Below, piece by piece: positions 4,553 through 27,387 of a stretch of DNA of 64,000 bases (positions within the stretch are counted from its first letter, which is position 1; each line of letters begins with the position of its first letter). The notes below the pieces were generated by a model. The model had not been told where the DNA came from, searched no databases, and was given only the letters and a program-made list of their open reading frames with translations. Position numbers and translations under genes: made by a program. Where the stretch lies: positions 62,001-126,000 of the IMG/VR virus record IMGVR_UViG_3300023278_002893. One strand, written 5' to 3'.

Positions 4553-5111
4553 TCTCTACGACCCTACGCACGTTCTTGAATCCTGCTCGCTCCATGCGAG
4601 GCTTAAAAGACTCGAACGTGTACATAGCCTTGTGCGCTCCCCACTCTGTGTACTGCCCTGGGTGGGGGACTTCACCGTCTGGCATACAATCCCTCTCCCA
4701 GTCAGGGTTGCCGGAGATCTTCTCCCAACCATCGGGACCGCCAGGGTAATCGGAAAATCCTCCAAACAACGCGATCATGGTCTCTTCAGTGGAATGAGTC
4801 CCATCTACATAAGCGTGACATAAAAAGTCCAAATCAGGCATCTTGAGCCTAATGATTCCACTTGGTTTCAAAACTCTATACCACTCCCTAAGGACAGCGC
4901 CCACCTCTGTGTAGGAGAAATGTTCAACCGTATGGGCAGAGTAAAGATCATCCACCTCGTTGTCTGATATCCAATCCAGATTACGAACGTCTGACTCCCT
5001 ATCAACATTACCCACCTTTACAGCATCAACGTGGTAATATCCGGGCTCTCCGTGCGGGCCAGACCCCAACTCTATACGAACAGGACTACTTGCTGACGTC
5101 AGGAACTGCAT
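4518..5111 (-). CDS. Methyltransferase type 11-like protein
   Basis: IELGSG, YSAHTVEH, EWYRVLKPSG..PD. Confidence 0.7.
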   Translation of the reverse strand: MQFLTSASSPVRIELGSGPHGEPGYYHVDAVKVGNVDRESDVRNLDWISDNEVDDLYSAHTVEHFSYTEVGAVLREWYRVLKPSGIIRLKMPDLDFLCHAYVDGTHSTEETMIALFGGFSDYPGGPDGWEKISGNPDWERDCMPDGEVPHPGQYTEWGAHKAMYTFESFKPRMERAGFKNVRRVVENDWELHVTGTK

Positions 5112-7068
5112 CTGATACTTTCTTTTTAGTAGTCTGCCTGAATGACAAGCCTTTCTTATCTTTGGACAGACTAACTGTTACCTTCGACCCCGCACCAACG
5201 TCCTCTCCCAAGATCGCCTTGGCAAGGGGGGTGTTAAGGAACTTCTTTACTGCCCTTCGCATCGGGCGAGCGCCGAACTTCTTGTCGATGCCTCGATCTA
5301 AGAGGAAGTTTTTGGCACCCAGATTGAAAGTAAGAACCAACCCTCGGGATTTCTTGACCTGCTCGTTGATCTCGGCGAGGAGAATATCCAGAATGTGCAT
5401 GTAATCTCCACGCTCCAGCAATCGGAAATGAATCACATCATCAACCCGGTTCAAGAACTCCGGTTTGAACTTCTTCTTCAGTGCGGCCGAGCGTGCCTTG
5501 GTAGTCTTGGTCTCGTCCGCCTCGTGCTCCCCACCAAACCCCATAGTCTTGCCTACATTATCTACTTCCTTAACGCCGATGTTCGAGGTCATGATAATGA
5601 AGCACTGCTTGAAGGAAACTTTCTTACCCCCCTTACTCTCCGTAAGAACACCATCATCGAGGATCTGGAGGATGCGCTCGTGAAAATTACCATGTGCCTT
5701 CTCGATCTCGTCAAAGAGAACAACCGAGAAAGGATTCTTAGATACTTCCTTAGTCAGATGACCACCCTCATCATACCCCACATACCCAGGAGGGGAACCA
5801 GTTAGTTTGGCTACCTCATGAGACTGCTGGTATTCCTGACAATCTATCCGCACAAGATGTGCGTCCAGAACCTCAGCGAGAGCCTTCGCAGCCTCGGTCT
5901 TACCTACACCTGTATTACCGGTAAGCAGGAAGCAACCTAGGGGCTCGTGGTCACGTTTAAGTCCCACCGAAGCTCGCTGGATAGCATCTGTCACCATCTC
6001 TATAGCCTCATCCTGACCAACAATGTGCTTCTTCAACTTGTCGGAAAGATTAAGTAGGGTTTCCTTAGGAACATCCTCAAATCTCTTTCTTTTAGAAGAC
6101 GCAGACTGGCTCTCTTCATTCCCCGCCGCTGACATTCTTCTATTGTTCTTAGTCTTAGATCGCTGTCTATCCTTGAAATCTGCACGGATCTTCTTCAGAT
6201 CGACATTCTCCAACTTGAGAAACGGATTATAATCTATAGCGATTTCATACAGCTCCTGTACCAGCTTAGCGGGCTTAGTGTGCTGCGTAACGCCCATAGT
6301 ATCCAACAGATGGAAGATATCAGCAAAGTCTTCGATGCACAGATGTACTATCAGAAGATGATAGCCGCTAATGGTCTCAAATGGCGTACCTCCCAACAGC
6401 AATGATGCGGTATCTTCGTCTGCTTCATACTGACGAATGTTCAATCCCACACCTATCTTCTTCCAACGGTGTCCAATCAGCTCATAGGGCACATCGTCTT
6501 TGCCCCCACCGCCCCCGCCCGGGCTATCCCTGAAGGGGTTATCGGGAGGTGATTCGTCCTGGGGACCATCTAAAGAGCCGATCTCATCATCATCAAAGAA
6601 GGGATTCCTAGGCCCCTCTACCGCATCCGGCGCGCGGGTAATAACCGCAGGGCCGAAGTCGGAAAGCGGAGGGTCCTGATCCCATAGAGAATTACTGGTG
6701 AGGGGACGAGCATCCTCATCCTCCCGCACAGTGGCTTCGATCTTCATTACATTGTTATCATTTATCATGATATTCTCCGGCAAAAACGCCGGACAATACT
6801 TATAGACCAACGACAACGCTTCGGCCCTAATCTCTTCGACCCTCGTATAGAGTTCTTTTCTCCTGCGAAGGTGGTAGAAAAAAGGTGAGGAATTTGCCAT
6901 GCAAGTTCCTAGCACAAAATCCTCATAAAACACCCGATACATGAGTCCCTTATCGGGGGAGAGCAACGATAACTTATCATTTACATCCCCATCAGGGTAT
7001 TCGAGGATCATGACATGGAAATCCGCAGACTCCAAAAATACCTTATGTGTAACATAAGCTTTGGACAT
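5086..7068 (-). CDS. Clp/Hsp100 ATPase with a single (D2-type) AAA+ module and an unrecognised N-terminal half
   Basis: IVGQDEA, Walker A GNTGVGKT, pore loop GSPPGYVG, Walker B VVLFDEIEKA, MTSN, MGF loop, FKPEFLNRVD, sensor-2 GARPMRR; no D1 module. Confidence 0.85.
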   Translation of the reverse strand: MSKAYVTHKVFLESADFHVMILEYPDGDVNDKLSLLSPDKGLMYRVFYEDFVLGTCMANSSPFFYHLRRRKELYTRVEEIRAEALSLVYKYCPAFLPENIMINDNNVMKIEATVREDEDARPLTSNSLWDQDPPLSDFGPAVITRAPDAVEGPRNPFFDDDEIGSLDGPQDESPPDNPFRDSPGGGGGGKDDVPYELIGHRWKKIGVGLNIRQYEADEDTASLLLGGTPFETISGYHLLIVHLCIEDFADIFHLLDTMGVTQHTKPAKLVQELYEIAIDYNPFLKLENVDLKKIRADFKDRQRSKTKNNRRMSAAGNEESQSASSKRKRFEDVPKETLLNLSDKLKKHIVGQDEAIEMVTDAIQRASVGLKRDHEPLGCFLLTGNTGVGKTEAAKALAEVLDAHLVRIDCQEYQQSHEVAKLTGSPPGYVGYDEGGHLTKEVSKNPFSVVLFDEIEKAHGNFHERILQILDDGVLTESKGGKKVSFKQCFIIMTSNIGVKEVDNVGKTMGFGGEHEADETKTTKARSAALKKKFKPEFLNRVDDVIHFRLLERGDYMHILDILLAEINEQVKKSRGLVLTFNLGAKNFLLDRGIDKKFGARPMRRAVKKFLNTPLAKAILGEDVGAGSKVTVSLSKDKKGLSFRQTTKKKVSDAVPDVSK

Positions 7069-10767: not shown

Positions 10768-11048
10768 AGGAATCTCTGACCTCCGGGGTATTTAGTGTAA
10801 TAAACTATTCCGCCGACCCAAAATAAATTGCCGATGAAAAGAAGTAAGCCTCCCCACCAAGACCATGACTGCTCCAGGTGTGAGTAGTAGTATAGATTCC
10901 AAGCACCCCAGGATGTAAAGAAAACCGTAGCATACTTAGACACGCCCGCCACCATCTTATCTTTACATACCTGCCTGAAGTGATCGAAGACGGCAAAGGC
11001 CCCAAGGAATTCAAATATACCATTTATCATGTCAGGCATGTCAGTCAT
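10764..11048 (-). CDS. Small 3-TM membrane protein, PQ-loop/SemiSWEET-like
   Basis: Three hydrophobic segments with a KDKMVAGVS loop and WNLYYY. Confidence 0.45.
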   Translation of the reverse strand: MTDMPDMINGIFEFLGAFAVFDHFRQVCKDKMVAGVSKYATVFFTSWGAWNLYYYSHLEQSWSWWGGLLLFIGNLFWVGGIVYYTKYPGGQRFL

Positions 11049-11255
11049 TTAGTTCTCTTTTCCTTTGGAATGAGTGTGTCTTACCGCAGTGCCGGGAAAC
11101 ACAACCCCGCCTAAATTATTCGCGGCGAAATTATATGCTTCGACCGAATCATCGAAGGTGCCCAACAACACATGTCCCTCTAAAGTAAGTCCATAGACAA
11201 AGAATACAGTTTTTATCTTTAAATCTGAGTCTCTATCTGATATTTCATAAGTCAT
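11049..11255 (-). CDS. Hypothetical protein
   Basis: GAGGAG RBS; ORF track. Confidence 0.55.
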   Translation of the reverse strand: MTYEISDRDSDLKIKTVFFVYGLTLEGHVLLGTFDDSVEAYNFAANNLGGVVFPGTAVRHTHSKGKEN

Positions 11256-11291
11256 TTACTTCTCCTCAAAAGTTCTACCTAGTACCTTGAT

Positions 11292-11463
11292 CCTAGTCCC
11301 TGAAAGAAACGAAGGGGGTTTCCAGACATATCCTCAGCCCAAATACAAATGGAACTAATAGCCTGAGTAATGTTCAGCCAACCAAACAAAGGCGCACTCG
11401 CTCCAAGACTAGTTCCATTTCTCATAACAGACTTTATAGCCCGTTGGAATCAGGTGGGCCAGG
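11292..11463 (-). ncRNA. Putative structured non-coding RNA (unidentified)
   Basis: ~220-nt gap in a dense operon. Nested stems on the minus strand: AAATGGAACTAGT/ATTAGTTCCATTT (13 bp), ACGGGCT/AGTCTGT, TTCCA/TGGAA, CCTGA/TCAGG, CCTGG/CTAGG; G:U pairs favour the minus strand. Confidence 0.35.
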
Positions 11464-11473
11464 CCCATCTATC

Positions 11474-12049
11474 CTAACTTACCAGAGATTCAAGCTTCTC
11501 AATTCTTTTTAGAGCACAATCCACACTGCTTTCGTTGTACTCCACCTGATTCAAAAACTTCCTAACAAAAGCACCCACATGATGAGCTGCGGAAATCCTA
11601 AGATCCCGAGGAGCATGGGTCAAACGTACTGTACTCCCCTCCAACCAAACATGTCTCATTTCAGGACCTTCTATACGATCTGGATCATTTTTCTCTACCC
11701 GGAAAAGATGGGCAACTATGTACCAATTAGTACTAAGTTTAGAATATCCCAATCGCCAGAAAAATAAAGCCCCTGTCGCATCCTCGTGAAAACAAAGTCG
11801 GTATTGACTATCTGTCGCAGGATCTGTATCCTCTTTAAGTATGAAAGGGTACCCAACCTCAAAATCCCTGAGCTTGTCCTCCAAGACTTTATAGAAATCT
11901 GTTACCCTTTCGGTCTTCGTGTTTATAGATTTGGAAAGATCTTCCAGTTTCTCTAACGCCACCTCAGTCTCCGACAGTTCCAACAAAATTCTCTTGTCGC
12001 GGTCACCGTCTATATACTTAGTTCGTTCTTCTTCTGTTTCGAATTCCAT
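11474..12049 (-). CDS. Hypothetical protein
   Basis: AAGGAGG RBS, 191 aa. Confidence 0.65.
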   Translation of the reverse strand: MEFETEEERTKYIDGDRDKRILLELSETEVALEKLEDLSKSINTKTERVTDFYKVLEDKLRDFEVGYPFILKEDTDPATDSQYRLCFHEDATGALFFWRLGYSKLSTNWYIVAHLFRVEKNDPDRIEGPEMRHVWLEGSTVRLTHAPRDLRISAAHHVGAFVRKFLNQVEYNESSVDCALKRIEKLESLVS

Positions 12050-12091
12050 TTTGGATTCCTCCTTTTTGTCCAGATTCCTCTGGAAATAAAT

Positions 12092-12455
12092 GCCCAGAAT
12101 TCTGTTGCCAGGGACTGGGCGACCCCCGCATACGTTATAGTAGTATCAGTACTTTACGCTGCAAATGCAAAAGACTCTACGAGGGTCTCGGTAGAACCGA
12201 ATTCCTTCGCGGCCAAATCTCTTGCGTACTCTACTAGAGAGTTAGTTTTGCCAATTGAAACATTTAGGATTTTTAACGAGGCCATCCTAAATCCTCGGGC
12301 TGCGTTCTCTACTTATTCCGTCCAGTCGATTCCAATTCTCCCCCAGTAATACTATACACACTCTGGTGGAGGAGGGGGGTGTCGAACCCCCGTGCTGATA
12401 CCGTCGTCAGAAGAGACCGAATAACAGCCATCTTGTACCTATACTCTCTTGTACA
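12092..12455 (-). ncRNA. ssrA: Circularly permuted (two-piece) tmRNA
   Basis: Acceptor piece first: ...GGCTGT...CAC-GGGGG-TTCGACA-CCCCC-CTCCTCC-A-CCA, ending at 12364. Then a 19-nt spacer. Coding piece from 12344: GGGGGAG-AATTGGAATCGAC...GCAGCC, pk1 (CGAGG/CCTCG, TTTAGGAT/ATCCTAAA), tag ORF, terminal pseudoknot. Acceptor stem GGGGGAG/CTCCTCC has the G3:U70 alanine identity pair. Outer ends are approximate. Confidence 0.92.
12154..12252 (-). other. tmRNA tag reading frame: (A)GKTNSLVEYARDLAAKEFGSTETLVESFAFAA*
   Basis: Resume codon GGC follows pk1 and TTCAATT; 32 codons then TAA; ends in the hydrophobic-AA degron. Confidence 0.85.
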
Positions 12456-12469
12456 GGTTCTACATATTT

Positions 12470-13132
12470 TCATCTCTTTAGACATAACTTCGGGTTGTAA
12501 AGCAAATTCCCCAAATTTTCCTCAATACGAACATCTGACCAACTGTCATTCCCCCTATCAAAAAAATCAAGATTTTTTAAGACGTAGCTGATAGCATCTT
12601 CGTATTCCCGTACGTTAATAATTTCACTCCCCAACGTAAATAGAAGGGGGCCAGCGCCGAGATGTTTACAACCCACTGTATAATTACAAATCTCTGCTAG
12701 TTGCATAAGACGCGGATGAATTATTTCCAATTCAATGTATTGTTGATGGTCTTTTTCTTTGGAACACATAGATTCAGATGGGGATTGTCTCTTTAATGTT
12801 AATGCACGTTTTGATTTTTTAATATAATCAGCAGCTCTCTTAAAAACGCCCCAAGTGAGTAGGGACGGCGTGGATTTTGGATCGTAGAGAGCGAAGTATG
12901 CCTGATAATAAAATACTAATCCACTCAACTCAAGAGCCTGGGAATTCAACTCAAAAGCCTGAGAAGTCAACTTAAGAGCCTGGTAATTTCTGCTCAGAGA
13001 CATGATTGCTACTATCAGAGATAATATCGCCACAAAAATGGCGACCCATGTTCCCATTTCTTCGGGCATGTTTAACTCCCCCAATCCCCAAGGAATTGAT
13101 ACATTATAAAACTCTGCCAAGATGTCACACAC
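12470..13132 (-). CDS. Hypothetical membrane-anchored protein (AT-rich)
   Basis: TM segment WVAIFVAILSLIVAIMSL followed by a heptad repeat. Confidence 0.6.
   Translation of the reverse strand: MCDILAEFYNVSIPWGLGELNMPEEMGTWVAIFVAILSLIVAIMSLSRNYQALKLTSQAFELNSQALELSGLVFYYQAYFALYDPKSTPSLLTWGVFKRAADYIKKSKRALTLKRQSPSESMCSKEKDHQQYIELEIIHPRLMQLAEICNYTVGCKHLGAGPLLFTLGSEIINVREYEDAISYVLKNLDFFDRGNDSWSDVRIEENLGNLLYNPKLCLKR
12925..12987. repeat. Three imperfect 21-bp tandem repeats within a CDS
   Basis: tcaactcaagagcctgggaat / tcaactcaaaagcctgagaag / tcaacttaagagcctggtaat. Confidence 0.7.
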
Positions 13133-13148
13133 AACCTGTTCTCCTTAC

Positions 13149-13316
13149 TTAATTCTTCGCAATAAAACCCGCAGCACCCCTATAATATTCCCTTACCACA
13201 CCACCAACTTCTTTTGCTTTTCTCTCAGCCTTTTCTTTATCTTTGAACTCGTCAGATATTTTTTCTTTACCTTCTGAATCTGTTCTAACTACTACATACC
13301 GAATCCATTTATCCAT
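13149..13316 (-). CDS. Small hypothetical protein (55 aa, not in ORF track)
   Basis: MDKWIRYVVVRTDSEGKEKISDEFKDKEKAERKAKEVGGVVREYYRGAAGFIAKN*; GAAGGA upstream. Confidence 0.55.
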   Translation of the reverse strand: MDKWIRYVVVRTDSEGKEKISDEFKDKEKAERKAKEVGGVVREYYRGAAGFIAKN

Positions 13317-13318
13317 AT

Positions 13319-13744
13319 CTAAAATCCTTCCCGCTGTCGATTCTTATCCATTGACTTCTTTAGATACTCTATTGAGGTTCGTAATCTTCTTGGGCTATCT
13401 CCAAAAAATCCTAGTCCAGAATTACAATTACCACAAAGCAAGCCTCTGACCTTCCCACTTTTATGGTCGTGGTCTATCACTAACTTCTTAGTGGAATCTA
13501 AACAAATAGCACAACTATCTTCTTGTTCCCAGACCATCCTGTTATAATCATCCTGGGAAAGTCCATACTTATGTAGCCGGGCGCGATTACTTTTACAATC
13601 CTTACATCTATGGTCGAACTCATCGTTCGTGTTCGGATCTCTATCGAAACTACTATGTGGTCGATGTTCGTGACAGCAGTCGCAGTATTTATTCTCGGCA
13701 AGATCTACGTCTGGTAAGCCAAAAAGACGGAACTGGGTGGCCAT
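13319..13744 (-). CDS. Endonuclease VII family (His-Me finger) nuclease
   Basis: KYGLS..DY..M...Q..CAIC...LVIDHDHKSGKVRGLLCGNCNSGLG. Confidence 0.85.
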   Translation of the reverse strand: MATQFRLFGLPDVDLAENKYCDCCHEHRPHSSFDRDPNTNDEFDHRCKDCKSNRARLHKYGLSQDDYNRMVWEQEDSCAICLDSTKKLVIDHDHKSGKVRGLLCGNCNSGLGFFGDSPRRLRTSIEYLKKSMDKNRQREGF

Positions 13745-13745
13745 T

Positions 13746-14000
13746 TTAATTCTTCCTATTCATCACATCATGCAACATATTAAGCATGAACATGAGTCCA
13801 TATGCCTTCTTAAAGAAATCATCTGGTGCTTTGCTAATCCTCTCCCACGCGGCGCTCTCTTCGGGAGTAAATTTACCCTCTTTAATCAAAGCCATGTGTT
13901 CTTTGTCTATCACAAAATCGTAATGGTAATGACCTTCTTCATCTTGGTAAACCTGTATGCCTGTTTTTTCTTCCGACATTTCTATCTCCAGAACACCCAC
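13746..14000 (-). CDS. Hypothetical protein
   Basis: ORF track; start uncertain. Confidence 0.5.
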   Translation of the reverse strand: MGVLEIEMSEEKTGIQVYQDEEGHYHYDFVIDKEHMALIKEGKFTPEESAAWERISKAPDDFFKKAYGLMFMLNMLHDVMNRKN

Positions 14001-21009: not shown

Positions 21010-21612
21010 TTATCCTCTCGTACTCTTAGTCTGGATTTTATCAACAATTCCAAACTCCATTGCTTCCTCCGCAGACATCCATTTGTCTCTGTCGTAGAGG
21101 GATTTACACTCTTCCACCGTTTTACCCGTGTTCAGTGCTAAATCTTTCATCAAGATCTCATTAACGGTTTCCATCTCACGCATCGTGATCTGGACATCGG
21201 TAATATCGCCCTTCGCTCCGCCAGATACCTGATGCATCATAATACGTGCTCTCGGCATAGAATAACGCTTACCTTTTGTACCTCCCGCCAAAAGAAAACA
21301 CCCCATGCTAGCAGCAGACCCAACACATAAAGTATGAATGTCGGGCTTGATGTATTCCATCGTATCATATATCCCAAGACCTGCGGACACCGACCCACCA
21401 GGTGAGTTGATGTACATAAATATGTCCTTGTTGGGATCGTCATTCTCCAAAAAGAGGAGTTGACCTATGATAAGATTGGCCATCGCATCGCTAACTGGGG
21501 TGCCTAGGACTATAATCCTATCTCTCAATAACCTTGAGTAAATATCGTACGCTTTCTCACTATTGCCATCCTTTTCGATAACAACCGGCATTGGAATTCC
21601 TGCTTCAGACAT
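21010..21612 (-). CDS. clpP: ATP-dependent Clp protease proteolytic subunit
   Basis: YDIYSRLLRDRII, YINSPGG, catalytic AASMG, IMMHQ, DRDKWMSAEEA.EFGIVD. Confidence 0.95.
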   Translation of the reverse strand: MSEAGIPMPVVIEKDGNSEKAYDIYSRLLRDRIIVLGTPVSDAMANLIIGQLLFLENDDPNKDIFMYINSPGGSVSAGLGIYDTMEYIKPDIHTLCVGSAASMGCFLLAGGTKGKRYSMPRARIMMHQVSGGAKGDITDVQITMREMETVNEILMKDLALNTGKTVEECKSLYDRDKWMSAEEAMEFGIVDKIQTKSTRG

Positions 21613-22954: not shown

Positions 22955-23617
22955 TTATAGCATAATCCTAGCATTATCTATTTCTAAATCACGCACTTCT
23001 GAAACCAGAATAAAGCCAGGAAGTAACTCACCCGTCGTAAGATAATACAGATAGTCTAAAAAATCAAAGGCGGCTTTGGTGGCTACCAAATCATCTCTTC
23101 GAAAGAAACAAACAGCTTGCTTTGACCAACCTTTCTGCCCCGGGGCCAGAAGACAAATAATATCTATGTTAGTATTATTCTCCTTACTATTCAAACTATC
23201 AGCCACCCGTATTTGAACCTTTGCAAGATCTTGTGAAATCAGTAATATAAGAATTGCTGGTAGGTCACTAGAATCTAAGAAATCTGGTAAAGTTCTCAGA
23301 GATAGAAATTTTCCAGTAGCTTCTTCCATCACATTTTGTAACCACCACTCTGTGTAAGAGGTAGTCCGTTTTTTATGTTCTGCCAGTATCCACTGACTCT
23401 CTTTCGTCTCTATTAGAAAATCAGGCCTTTTACCAATATCTGATATATCTTTTGGATCATCTATATACAAATAAACTTTGTCTCCAAACCATTTTTCTGA
23501 CCAGGGTGGGGGGTTTTGTTGTTTCTTCAACTGCCTCTTATGGTTTTCCCTTTTTCTATAACGATCTTCTTTCGACTTTCTCGACAATTTCCGCTTCTTC
23601 TTATTTACCATCATCAC
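22955..23617 (-). CDS. Hypothetical protein (AT-rich, basic N-terminus)
   Basis: ORF track; composition differs from flanks. Confidence 0.55.
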   Translation of the reverse strand: MMMVNKKKRKLSRKSKEDRYRKRENHKRQLKKQQNPPPWSEKWFGDKVYLYIDDPKDISDIGKRPDFLIETKESQWILAEHKKRTTSYTEWWLQNVMEEATGKFLSLRTLPDFLDSSDLPAILILLISQDLAKVQIRVADSLNSKENNTNIDIICLLAPGQKGWSKQAVCFFRRDDLVATKAAFDFLDYLYYLTTGELLPGFILVSEVRDLEIDNARIML

Positions 23618-26600
23618 TCACATCCGCTATGACCGCAATCGGCGCACTTCACACAACCACTCTCCATAATCAATTTCTTAGACTGACAGGAGCGGCATCT
23701 TGAAACCTCTAAATACTCTTCGTCTGTAATATACTTCTTCAGTACCCGCAGGATCGCTTTACTGAACGCAGTTACCTCCCCATCACACTTCGTGAGCTGG
23801 GAAACCAGCGCGTTGAGTGGAGCCCCGTGTCTAAGACTGGTGGATAAGAGACGGGTGACCATTCGATGTTCATCATTCAGAAGGAGCTGAGCTACGTTTT
23901 TGATTGTCCAGGTGTCCTCACCTGTACCAATCACGAGGTTATATCTACCGTGCCCATTCCTCCTCAGCATACCACCTGTGCGGGATGAGGATATTTCGAT
24001 ATGTTCCTCCGGGAAACAGAAAACCTCATAGGGTTTCCCATGGAGAAGACCAACCAAAACCTTCCACTTCTCGCCCTTTACACTAACCGTATGAATGTCA
24101 CAATCCAGATCATCGGGCCGTACAGGGGCATTCATCGTTACCACCGTTTTTGGCCTGGAACCTGGATTCTTGGACGGATTCTTGAGGGTCTCCAAGATCT
24201 GAGTCTTGGAACCGTCCCGATATACGGCGGTGGATTTGATATTACTATCGAAAGCACCTATATAAGCACCCATGATATCGTCTACAGTCGCTTCAGGCGG
24301 GAGATTGATGGTATTATGAGATACTATACCAGATACAAGATAGTTATGTGATTCTTCAACCTCCACATCATACATTGAGATTTTGCCTGAATTCTCTATT
24401 GAAGAAATCTTCATCACCTTGCCCAAAATTTCTAATCCTAATTCTTCTGCCAATTCCCGAGTACAATGTTGGGATCTTCTTTGTCGTAAATTACGGACAG
24501 CAGAATAACGAGGATGGTCCGATTTGATAGGCAGTGTGAACACATCTTCATGCTCGAATGCAACCAGGTGTGCTCTACCGCCATTAACTTTGGGAGAACA
24601 TTTGTGTAACTCTAAAGGTGTGATGGTTTGCATTAGTTCATCAGAAACCATTACGGAATGAACGTAATAGCCGTGAGACTTAACTAGTTTCTTACCACAA
24701 TAAACACGGGGCTTTCCAAAAGAACGAAGCATTTCTGCGACTTGATACGCCAGTGCTTGGGATTTACCTTCGTACACAACCAAACCCCTTCCCGGCCGCA
24801 AATAACCATCTAAAGTAAGTCCTTCGATAAAATGTCTCTTTTCAGCAAAACTTCCTTGTAAAATCTGATCAGGAACTCTCTTATCATCACTCCTATAACC
24901 AATCAATTCTCTAAGATATCTAACTAATACACGAGAGGTAAGTCTGTGCTCAACCACACCCGTCCGCGAATCTATATGAACTTCTGGAATAACGCCAAAT
25001 ACATCTTCAGCGAGTGTGTTGTAGAAATTCCCCACATTCCCTGAATCTTTTTCGTATAAAGAAACCTTACCAGTGGATTCCTCCAAATGACCATCCGCAG
25101 CCAACATTCCTAAAAGTTTAGCTAGATAAACCGACATTTTATCCGGTAAATTTATAAAGTTCGCATTAGTTTTCCTATCAAAATCTATATTTATTGTACG
25201 AGAATTCTCAACATCAAAAACCTCAAAATCGTCGTTGATAAATATCAAATCATCGGGAACTAGATCACCCAATGTTTTCCAACCCCCGATAGTTTTTACT
25301 TTATGAGAATCAGATGCGCCAGTTATGGATGATCCGTTTTGCAGAACAAGACTGGTTGCATCTTTCTCACCGGCACTGTAATGGGAAAGTACTTTACGAT
25401 GAATACCCTTCTCATCTATAACCATCAGATCCTGAAGCGGTTCCCCAAAAACATCAACACCGCGTGCGTTACCGCACTGCTCAATAGGTAAAATTCCTCT
25501 ATTAGTATTGATCAAAGTACCCCCAGCTAAACATTTACTCACACTAGAATCAACCTGCTCAGAAAACACCGCCTGCATCGCCAAGTGGTCTTGCCAGCTG
25601 ATGTCCTGAGCCTGCTCGAAGTACTTTGGCACCCTCTTATGTCGCCTTAGTTCCCGGAAATCGTGGTTGTATTCCGCAAAGTCAATACCGCGAGTCTCCA
25701 TCCATTCTAAAAATGAAGGGCAACCATCCATAATAGTTCCGATATTGGAATTCCGCTGATACGCCATAGCAAAATAAGGCTCGCACCCAGAAGAATAACC
25801 GGTAATAGTTCCAGTTGTTCCCGTAGGAGCTTGCGTAAGGATAGTGACATTCGCAATACCATGGGTCTTTAACTCCTTCTCCAGATCAGGTCTCTCCTTG
25901 AGAAGCTGCTGGATGAACTTACTCTTCTTGAACTTCTTGAAGTCGTAAGCTGGGAATGGACCAATCTCTTTGGCCATATCAATGGACGCTTCGTACGCTG
26001 TGTGCTTGATGAACTTGAGAATCTTCTTAGCCATTCCGCGGCCAGAATCTTGACTATAAATGTAATCCTTATCGGTGCGCATGGACATGCGGATTAACGC
26101 CTCGTGCATACCAATGGTTCCCAAACCTATGCGACGCTCTTTCTGGGTGTTCTCATCAATCTTCTCAACTCCAGTCTCGTTGAGAAGGGTAATCCAGTTA
26201 AGACTACGCACCAAAACAAAGACTGCTTCCCTCAACCCATCCCAATCCACCGAACCGTCCTCATTTACAAACTCAGGAAGGACAAGACTGGACAAGCAAC
26301 ACACTGACCATGGTGGAAGAACCTGCTCTGCACAAGGATTGGTTGCGTCTAACGGATTAAAATATTCCCCATTGTGATAAGCACGTGCCCTATCTACGAA
26401 AAAGATACCAGGGCACCCATCCTCCCATGCATTGGTACAGATACGTCTAAACCACTCATATGCGGTAAGGTGATAGGAACTCTTGACAAGTTTTAGATGC
26501 TTAGTATTCCTAAAAGGAACCTCATTCGTAGCCTCATGTAGTGCTATTTCTTCATCTGGCGCGCACACTGAAATGGGAATAACAGTCTCCACGCCGGGCA

Positions 26601-27387
26601 TTGTGGGATCATACATAGTCAATTCATAATCCCAGAGCGCCCAGGTCTTTTCTTCCCAACTCAACTTCCACGGCTTCTTCGACTGACGCTTAACCTGGCG
26701 CATAAAATTATCTGAAATAGCGACAGAAACATTGAATGTCTGCCATGGATAGGGGTTAGTCCATTGCCACTGCTCGAACATACTCTCATCGGTGATCACT
26801 GCAAACTTGCGAAGATTCTCCCAATTGCCTCGGGACTTCTTCGTAATAAACTTCAGAAGACCGGGGTGGGTATCATTCAGAATACCCATATTAGCGCCGC
26901 TACGATTACCTCCCTGCTGAATATTAGAGGAAGCGTATCCCATAGAAGTAATGAAACCTTCAGGGCCACTTGCGCGCGCATTGGCACCCTTACACCAAGC
27001 GCCTGCCGGGCGCAAGCTGGAGAAGTTGATCCCCGTGCCTCCCCCATGTGCCTGGATATGGAAGTGAATCCGCTGGGCCTCAGAGATCTCCTCCCGGCTG
27101 TCCCCAATACCTAGGACAAAACAATTGAACATGTTCTTGATCCCCGTACCTGCTTGGGCAAGAGGACGTCCTGCGTACATGATCTTCTTCTCTTCGCACA
27201 GGGTCTGCGCGAGGGCTCTTCGGTGGTCCTCATCGTTCTGATAAATATAGTTATTTGTACGATTAAATGTTTCAAAAATATCCTTCTCGACCGGGAGACC
27301 GGAGTCGTCTTTGAGGTAATAACGGGAACCCGCAATAGACTCGTGAGCGGGATTAGTGAAGTAAGTTTTAGCTGTGTACTTACCCAT
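23614..27387 (-). CDS. nrdJ: Class II (B12-dependent) ribonucleotide reductase, intein-containing
   Basis: NCFV, GGGTG.NFS.LRP, TNPCAEQ..CCL, RRIGLG, APTGT, DSSVSK/TIN, C-terminal TSCPD-like domain and CxxC...ESGCVKCADCGHSGC; no beta-subunit gene nearby. Confidence 0.9.
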   Translation of the reverse strand: MGKYTAKTYFTNPAHESIAGSRYYLKDDSGLPVEKDIFETFNRTNNYIYQNDEDHRRALAQTLCEEKKIMYAGRPLAQAGTGIKNMFNCFVLGIGDSREEISEAQRIHFHIQAHGGGTGINFSSLRPAGAWCKGANARASGPEGFITSMGYASSNIQQGGNRSGANMGILNDTHPGLLKFITKKSRGNWENLRKFAVITDESMFEQWQWTNPYPWQTFNVSVAISDNFMRQVKRQSKKPWKLSWEEKTWALWDYELTMYDPTMPGVETVIPISVCAPDEEIALHEATNEVPFRNTKHLKLVKSSYHLTAYEWFRRICTNAWEDGCPGIFFVDRARAYHNGEYFNPLDATNPCAEQVLPPWSVCCLSSLVLPEFVNEDGSVDWDGLREAVFVLVRSLNWITLLNETGVEKIDENTQKERRIGLGTIGMHEALIRMSMRTDKDYIYSQDSGRGMAKKILKFIKHTAYEASIDMAKEIGPFPAYDFKKFKKSKFIQQLLKERPDLEKELKTHGIANVTILTQAPTGTTGTITGYSSGCEPYFAMAYQRNSNIGTIMDGCPSFLEWMETRGIDFAEYNHDFRELRRHKRVPKYFEQAQDISWQDHLAMQAVFSEQVDSSVSKCLAGGTLINTNRGILPIEQCGNARGVDVFGEPLQDLMVIDEKGIHRKVLSHYSAGEKDATSLVLQNGSSITGASDSHKVKTIGGWKTLGDLVPDDLIFINDDFEVFDVENSRTINIDFDRKTNANFINLPDKMSVYLAKLLGMLAADGHLEESTGKVSLYEKDSGNVGNFYNTLAEDVFGVIPEVHIDSRTGVVEHRLTSRVLVRYLRELIGYRSDDKRVPDQILQGSFAEKRHFIEGLTLDGYLRPGRGLVVYEGKSQALAYQVAEMLRSFGKPRVYCGKKLVKSHGYYVHSVMVSDELMQTITPLELHKCSPKVNGGRAHLVAFEHEDVFTLPIKSDHPRYSAVRNLRQRRSQHCTRELAEELGLEILGKVMKISSIENSGKISMYDVEVEESHNYLVSGIVSHNTINLPPEATVDDIMGAYIGAFDSNIKSTAVYRDGSKTQILETLKNPSKNPGSRPKTVVTMNAPVRPDDLDCDIHTVSVKGEKWKVLVGLLHGKPYEVFCFPEEHIEISSSRTGGMLRRNGHGRYNLVIGTGEDTWTIKNVAQLLLNDEHRMVTRLLSTSLRHGAPLNALVSQLTKCDGEVTAFSKAILRVLKKYITDEEYLEVSRCRSCQSKKLIMESGCVKCADCGHSGCE
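24313..25533 (-). mobile_element. Intein with LAGLIDADG homing endonuclease (407 aa) in nrdJ
   Basis: Starts CLAGGTLI after VSK; ends YDVEVEESHNYLVSGIVSHN before Thr+1; LAGLIDADG blocks LLGMLAADG and FIEGLTLDG; AT-richer than the exteins. Confidence 0.92.

Follow-up and report, generated by a model that had tools for sequence, protein, structure and literature searches.

A phage-encoded two-piece tmRNA with an unusually long tag, and a Clp-type unfoldase as its possible reader

The tmRNA gene and its place in a jumbo-phage genome

The stretch of DNA analysed here (the window, 64,000 nucleotides) comprises bases 62001-126000 of the virus record IMGVR_UViG_3300023278_002893, a sediment-derived genome of 297,725 bp with 47% G+C and 29 tRNA genes that CheckV rates complete (label G000). 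Because the record carries phage head and replication genes (among others a phage major head protein, DNA polymerase, helicase, recombinase and ribonucleotide reductase), the tmRNA described below is a jumbo-phage gene. It lies on the minus strand, where window positions 12429-12154 give a full-length match to the Rfam family tmRNA_permuted (RF04321) with 78.3 bits (E 2.6e-13; gathering score 47); the window's own tmRNA has no match to the alpha, beta or cyano lineage models at the gathering cut-off. The acceptor half stands upstream of the coding half, a permuted order identical in 13 of 13 aligned relatives, and together with the Rfam match this bears out the first-pass annotation, which had taken the gene to be of the two-piece kind.

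That annotation had also placed a 32-residue tag at 12154-12252. Translation of the interval yields exactly 32 residues and a stop, so the reading holds with one correction, that the feature is on the minus strand. In the RF04321 alignment the codon GGC coincides with the consensus resume codon, and the last four codons and the stop with the consensus A-V-A-A-stop; compared with the model, the tag is longer by an insertion of 57 nt (19 codons), in keeping with the earlier description of the tag as unusually long. ARAGORN 1.2.41 at default settings did not call the window tmRNA, which RF04321 finds, and pipelines relying on ARAGORN only would leave it unannotated; the program does call the homologue in a related phage (G003), with a tag of 31 residues.

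The window copy has a 7-bp acceptor stem with a G3:U70 pair, a T-arm and an encoded ACCA, and its tag frame lacks a start codon, opens on a resume codon of the Ala/Gly/Asp type, closes with a small hydrophobic end and a stop, and shows coding-type evolution. Judged by comparative sequence analysis, this is a genuine, conserved, phage-encoded two-piece tmRNA with a translated 32-residue tag. The phage encodes no SmpB, which implies dependence on a host factor. Neither a sigma-70-like promoter nor an intrinsic terminator was found within 11900-12700, and the tmRNA is probably cut out of a long minus-strand transcript.

Table 1. Features of the tmRNA locus and associated genes, in window coordinates
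Feature	Position	Strand	Description	Basis
Acceptor piece	12364..12429	-	66 nt	Rfam alignment; covariation in P2, T-arm and acceptor stem
Intervening segment	12345..12363	-	19 nt, from CCA end to G1	Rfam alignment
Coding piece, minimum extent	12092..12344	-	Starts at G1; 3' limit is a minimum	Rfam alignment, covariation
Pseudoknot PK1	12262..12297	-		Both stems covary
Tag reading frame	12157..12252	-	32 codons	Translation, family alignment, coding signal, internal repeat
Tag stop codon TAA	12154..12156	-		Rfam alignment and translation
Stop-codon helix	12128..12162	-	12162-12156 with 12135-12128; small inner hairpin	Helices 9 and 10 100% paired
3' H-type pseudoknot	12092..12128	-		Both stems change compensatorily across relatives
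191-aa ORF	11474..12049	-	Conserved, unassigned function; directly downstream of tmRNA	Syntenic marker for relatives
Phage ClpP	21010..21612	-	200 aa	PF00574 245.5 bits; NCBIfam NF001368 280.6 bits (cut-off 249)
Single-ring AAA+ unfoldase	5086..7068	-	660 aa	Residues ~335-650 resemble the D2 module of ClpC/ClpA/ClpB

The acceptor piece contributes the 3' strands of the P2 helices and of the acceptor stem, as well as the T-arm (5 bp with the loop UUCGACA), and its last four bases are the encoded ACCA (12367-12364). The segment that follows varies among relatives in both length (9-35 nt) and sequence and is presumably excised by tRNA-processing enzymes. The coding piece opens with the 5' acceptor strand GGGGGAG (12344-12338), which includes the G3:U pair, and continues through a D-loop-like UCGAC and the 5' strands of P2 to PK1, the tag frame, the stop-codon helix and the 3' pseudoknot. 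In PK1, stem 1 pairs 12297-12293 with 12281-12277 and stem 2 pairs 12292-12284 with 12270-12262, which leaves 9 nt to the resume codon GGC (12252-12250). The stop-codon helix is comparable to helix 5 of one-piece tmRNA. Beyond it, the pseudoknot that the first-pass annotation had noticed at CTGGCAACAGAA proved real, as part of the H-type pseudoknot at 12128-12092, in which stem 1 pairs 12128-12123 with 12114-12109 and stem 2 pairs 12120-12115 with 12097-12092. Its loop AACAGAA (12106-12100) is near-invariant, reading AACAGGA in three relatives and ACCAGAA in one.

Two other features of the record may be mentioned in passing. Outside the window, the 29 tRNA genes include one, called by ARAGORN at G000:C1:1116-1192, with a four-base anticodon (ttca) and unassigned amino acid. 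Within it, the ribonucleotide reductase large-subunit ORF (23614-27387, minus strand) runs to 1257 aa, with a family match over residues 14-618 only and a G003 match of 355 residues, and may hold an intein or a fused domain.

Relatives, covariation and allele exchange

About 17 related tmRNAs were found in sediment metagenomes, together with one syntenic 296-kb phage. A generic tmRNA 3'-end pattern run over IMG/VR returned at least 118 stretches, on which ARAGORN called 60 tmRNAs; a separate acceptor-stem pattern script gave 35 loci of permuted order, the window copy included (34 of about 120 viral loci besides). The syntenic phage, G003, is a complete record of 295,848 bp in which 223 of 391 ORFs match the source phage in genome-wide synteny, at a median identity of 51%; its tmRNA sits in the same genomic place, scores 83.5 bits and has a tag plainly related to that of the window. 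Contigs with homologues of the downstream 191-aa ORF carried permuted tmRNAs as well. A peptide-pattern scan of JGI metagenomes added nine further contigs, using a query from a four-tag alignment since a six-tag alignment was too variable, and contigs with a homologue of the unfoldase gave four further tmRNAs. All relatives come from marine or other sediment metagenomes.

Other searches found no further member of the family. Megablast of window positions 11000-14000 gave no match among 50,697 phage records, and single neighbour proteins used as queries in viral contigs yielded none. No tmRNA was present on a 35.6-kb contig (L120) whose DNA polymerase is 84% identical, where coordinate arithmetic puts the syntenic site off the contig end, or on any of the 29 contigs that share the major capsid protein, most of which are small fragments; one of these 29, a near-identical record of 196.6 kb, has the locus off its end, again by coordinate arithmetic. 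One gapped DNA pattern scan produced chance matches in coding regions only and missed the known minus-strand match in G003, so that gapped patterns may overlook matches.

For covariation we aligned 13 distinct members (alignment A5) under a structure of nested helices plus PK1. Across these members 94.9% of cells are paired and 38 of the 56 pairs show compensatory changes, values reached by none of 500 shuffled controls; shifting the partner strand by one to three columns lowers the paired share to 35-45%. Pairing reaches 96.7% in the acceptor stem and 100% in the T-arm. The third acceptor pair is invariant (UG in 13 of 13); a G3:U pair is a mark of alanine identity. Helices 7 and 8, which form PK1, are paired in 100% and 92% of cells, with four of five pairs in each showing compensatory changes. 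In the stop-codon helix, the third positions of the last two alanine codons covary with their partners (UA:8/AU:5 and GC:7/CG:6). Of the two stems of the 3' pseudoknot, the first was counted as helix 11 and the second was read directly from the sequences.

Some members depart from the standard 3' end or T-loop. ACAA or ACUA takes the place of ACCA in several (L208, L212, L215, L216 and L225), and there CCA would need adding after trimming. T-loops without the usual UUCGA occur in three members (L212, L214 and L225), and an odd loop, GGCAGUA, in two unrelated assemblies. With a missing encoded CCA or an odd T-loop in some relatives, not every allele need be active.

Are the parts of this gene of mixed descent? 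The first-pass annotation had stated that the B. subtilis tag begins GKTNS, which is correct (PMC8767453), and had seen a conflict between that start and an alphaproteobacterial two-piece body. No such conflict exists. Tag starts vary within the family (GKTNS, AKTNS, AKNS, DNSS, DNS, GNS and GKMS), which confines the five-residue match to B. subtilis to one subclade, and the first four codons are the sole part of the tag that evolves near neutrally, with a pN/pS of 0.95. Under the older Rfam models, six relatives reach 55.9-73.7 bits with beta_tmRNA (cut-off 84), and L225 alone passes alpha_tmRNA (62.3 against 50). A chimera of Bacillus-type tag start and alphaproteobacterial body, an assembly artefact or a pseudogene would account for the five shared residues and for the failure of ARAGORN on the window copy, but would sit badly with a variable, nearly neutral start, with most relatives lying nearest beta_tmRNA, with an intact structure and reading frame, and with the recurrence of the same allele combinations in independent assemblies. 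We consider this explanation largely refuted and hardly credible.

Mosaic structure does occur within the family. One pair of members is 62-63% identical in the tRNA-like domain and PK1 but 99-100% identical in the tag and 3' pseudoknot, and another is 93% identical in the tag and about 60% on either side. The flanks of L215 and L217 are 89-93% identical, yet the two carry different tRNA-like alleles, with both combinations recurring in a second, independent assembly (L216 for L215, L218 for L217). Between the otherwise unalignable contigs L203 and L215, the tag region is the only alignable island. From these alignments, the mosaicism is between alleles of one phage family. HNH endonuclease genes lie directly upstream of the tmRNA at L203:1214-1483, L208:1565-2260 and L225:3221-3553; they may drive the exchange of tmRNA alleles, which looks like a homing-driven cassette swap.

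A 2025 tmRNA database has scattered "Permuted (beta)" tmRNA entries for Asgard, Nanoarchaeota, Halobacteriota, Thermoplasmatota and unusual bacterial phyla (PMC11915505, Supplementary Table 2). Members of the present family come from the same kinds of sediment assemblies as these stray calls (L213 is LAZR01005140.1), and one homologue of the unfoldase (P0023) is labelled as from an Altiarchaeales bin. Some of the "archaeal tmRNAs" and stray permuted calls in unexpected bins may be phage contigs of this kind.

Selection on the tag and its internal repeat

Judged by its substitution pattern, the tag evolves as coding sequence and is selected as a peptide along its whole length bar the first four residues. 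Tags in the family are 28, 30, 31, 32 or 38 codons long, all members falling within 28-38, and every indel is a multiple of three. Across 28 pairs pN/pS ranges from 0.06 to 0.74 in frame and from about 0.7 to 16 in the two alternative frames, where 5 of the 53 computable values lie below 0.9. The best-resolved pair has 15.5 synonymous against 5.5 non-synonymous differences in the tag. This comparative signal upholds the frame in which the tag was originally read. We also considered the frame one base later, starting at GCA, and rejected it: it runs for five codons to a stop here, starts on Pro or Thr in relatives and has no conserved ending.

The constraint is not confined to the end of the tag. 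In four independent pairs, pN/pS is 0.40 in the extension and 0.39 in the last nine codons, so that constraint on the extra segment equals that at the degron end. Every tag in the family starts on a resume codon GGC, GCC or GAC and ends A-x-[AS]-[AS], and upstream of this end the pattern S-[LIV]-[VM]-x-Y-A-x-x-L-x-x-[KE]-E-[FL] is conserved. Even in six divergent tags, S5, Y9, A10, L13 and E17 are invariant along with the final A-x-A-A.

These figures bear on an explanation in which the extra 20 or so residues have no role in recognition and act as a spacer that exposes the degron or fills the exit tunnel, or are conserved for RNA structure. RNAalifold predicts a long hairpin within the tag (columns 237-313) with some compensatory changes, the last two alanine codons clearly serve RNA pairing as well, and tag length varies from 28 to 38, all of which such an explanation would accommodate. 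It does not fit the codon-periodic substitutions or the equal pN/pS of extension and degron end, and a mere spacer would not keep the five specific residues that are invariant in divergent tags. We think it unlikely, and favour a peptide role for the upstream segment.

The tag of the source phage is laid out as a first unit (residues 1-15), a KEF linker (16-18) and a second unit (19-32) that ends A-F-A-A. In this phage and its nearer relatives the first unit aligns to the second with one gap, at a score about twice the shuffle mean (p 0.003-0.007); the three most distant tags no longer show it. The first-pass annotation had suggested extension by duplication, and the similarity of the units supports this in part, whereas a nucleotide repeat is clear in one relative only (16 of 17 bases, p 0.005), so the halves could instead have converged on a degron-like motif. 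The alignments fit a tag that, in the subclade of the source phage, consists of two tandem ssrA-like units joined by KEF, the product of an old duplication.

Whether near-identical long tags are common in some bacterial lineage was a point that the first-pass annotation had itself raised. Two tag-peptide patterns searched against 185,579 bacterial and archaeal species genomes (one genome each) gave 134 pattern matches and no related tag, in a search that very distant kin may escape. Among viral contigs, tags of at least 20 residues occur in 10 of the 60 tmRNAs called by ARAGORN, among the matches listed, which makes long tags a recurring phage trait and not one unique to the source phage; they may be a general trait of phage-borne tmRNAs. 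Unrelated tags of 31 residues were seen on viral contigs of 9 kb (L028), 21 kb (L055) and 158 kb (L046).

Phage Clp proteins, a proposed route for tagged products, and known systems

The phage encodes a true ClpP and, about 5 kb downstream of the tmRNA, a single-ring AAA+ unfoldase whose gene lies 4-6 kb away across syntenic relatives. The unfoldase matches AAA_2 (173 bits) and ClpB_D2-small (65 bits), as expected of a D2-type module with a small C-terminal domain, and the D2 modules of ClpB, ClpA and ClpC in the PDB match it with E 1e-74 to 1e-70. A loop reading MGF lines up with AGF in S. aureus ClpC and LGF in ClpC1-type chains, in a stretch closer to ClpC (E 1e-16 to 1e-13) than to ClpB (E 1e-8), and is a candidate ClpP-docking loop. 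Residues 1-330 match no Pfam family and include neither a Clp_N repeat domain nor a D1 ring; with one ring and no Clp_N, the protein is not a member of ClpA or ClpC proper. An AlphaFold2 model of the N-terminal region (pLDDT 71) has two similar domains (residues 1-130 and 195-312), each a beta-hairpin plus helix, and a disordered linker. Foldseek found no match to this model in the PDB at E <= 0.001, so the fold carries no mark of a tag-binding domain. The region is common to about 70 homologue clusters from sediment metagenomes, all of about 650 aa. As separate observations, the linker has repeated D-N-P-F motifs, and intein or homing-endonuclease domains are found in three homologues of 983-1064 aa.

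In each of the seven contigs that allowed a check for both (G000, G003, the 320-kb contig of L207, and L222 to L225), the unfoldase is accompanied by the tmRNA. G023, a complete relative with a capsid protein 69% identical, has ClpP and lacks both the unfoldase and any tmRNA. This co-occurrence is suggestive of a functional tie; it may also stem from common descent of a gene block, the two genes being neighbours in syntenic genomes and the one genome without both counting as a single event.

How might such a system work during infection? We propose that two cuts, one at the CCA end (12364) and one at G1 (12344), would release both pieces from the precursor, that the two would stay base-paired, and that the tRNA-like domain, with its G3:U pair, would be charged with alanine by a host enzyme. 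Charged tmRNA and host SmpB would then enter stalled ribosomes, and translation would resume at GGC (12252) and append the 32 residues. The tag is most likely a bipartite degron, with the C-terminal A-[FI]-A-A engaged by the pore of a Clp unfoldase and the conserved upstream segment serving as a second recognition element; the most probable receptor of the tag would be the phage unfoldase, with its novel N-terminal domains, acting with phage ClpP. Ribosomes stalled on broken host messages could in this way be freed and their products destroyed by the phage's own route. Overall, we put at roughly even odds the reading of the locus as a working two-piece tmRNA whose bipartite degron tag is read most probably by the phage unfoldase and ClpP.

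Recognition by an adaptor or a phage ATPase, which the first-pass annotation had suggested for the extra segment, appears the best lead, supported by the strict co-occurrence with the unfoldase. That the phage unfoldase in particular recognizes the tag has, in our estimate, about one chance in three. A complex prediction for unfoldase residues 1-335 with the 32-residue tag scored 0.00 in a run without controls, which counts neither for nor against binding. At much the same odds, tmRNA, unfoldase and ClpP could form a private and self-contained degradation circuit in which one half of a doubled, phage-specific degron goes to the N-terminal domains and the other to the pore, feeding phage ClpP. 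If so, rescue products would be routed away from, or independently of, the host ssrA-SspB-ClpXP pathway, and the virus would encode an orthogonal pair of degron and reader.

A possible alternative, to which we likewise give less than an even chance, is that the tag is read by host machinery only, whether ClpXP helped by an SspB-like adaptor, ClpAP, Lon or FtsH. Other tasks, such as virion maturation or the turnover of host proteins, would then fall to the phage unfoldase and ClpP, which would adjoin the tmRNA only by descent. With A-[FI]-A-A at its C terminus the tag has a standard ssrA-type ending, one open to host ClpXP unaided, bacterial tags are established to be bipartite too, and the phage already relies on host SmpB; moreover, ClpP occurs in relatives that have no tmRNA, and phage Clp genes are known without a link to tmRNA (PMC7824862). 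Against it, the absence of any related tag from the species genomes searched means that no host adaptor is known to have co-evolved with this one, and in all cases examined the unfoldase and tmRNA are either both present or both absent.

We regard as very improbable a tag that is not a degradation signal and marks or sequesters products, or a tmRNA that mainly competes with host tmRNA for SmpB and ribosomes. Inhibition of host tmRNA is reported for a phage tmRNA reduced to its tRNA-like domain (PMC4131195; PMC11915505), and in our reading of the tag alignment the upstream segment has the spacing of an amphipathic helix. Here, however, conservation extends to the full messenger-like domain, the helix around the stop codon and the degron-like end, and the phage carries ClpP, which favours the degron reading.

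The logic proposed for the bipartite degron resembles that of E. coli. The ssrA tag there has 11 residues, SspB binding its N-terminal part and ClpX its C-terminal LAA, so that the C-terminal part serves the pore and the upstream part a second site. The difference is that in E. coli the adaptor is a separate host protein, whereas here the upstream part has about 20 residues and its proposed reader is the N-terminal domain of a phage unfoldase. Bacterial two-piece tmRNAs likewise have a tRNA-like domain made of two RNAs, a G3:U pair, PK1 ahead of the resume codon and a small hydrophobic tag end, but 10 residues is the commonest length of a bacterial tag (PMC11915505), against 28-38 in the present family.

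Two-piece tmRNAs have been described in phages before and make up 53 of 133 unique phage tmRNAs (PMC9004378). Those of marine phages, such as the OM43 phage Melnitz and the pelagimyophages (PMC9004378), are likewise permuted, come from aquatic or marine settings and occur without a phage SmpB. They group with the alphaproteobacterial lineage, some with a glutamine riboswitch, whereas the present family fits no older lineage model well and differs further in its 28-38-codon tag, its own 3' pseudoknot, its occurrence in sediment phages of about 300 kb and a Clp unfoldase nearby. Large phages with a tmRNA also include Bacillus phage G and mycobacteriophages (PMC4131195), and phage G, like the source phage, has a Clp protease pair. 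Its tmRNA has a predicted 13-residue tag and its Clp proteins are ClpP and ClpX (PMC12484599); here the partner would be a single ring resembling ClpC D2 with a novel N-terminal region, and the tag appears doubled. Jumbo phages with ClpP, ClpA or ClpX have been noted (PMC7824862), and our literature search returned no account of a tag that is doubled or of a tmRNA linked with this unfoldase family.

The purpose of phage tmRNAs is still guesswork, and here the tag itself carries information: it has three times the usual length, is conserved at the level of residues across phages whose proteins are about 50% identical, is built like tandem degrons, and is inherited with a protease and an unfoldase of unassigned specificity. 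The question of why a phage would have its own tmRNA becomes a direct test with a few purified parts. A tag and unfoldase that prove to be a matched pair would make a compact, orthogonal degradation system of practical use.
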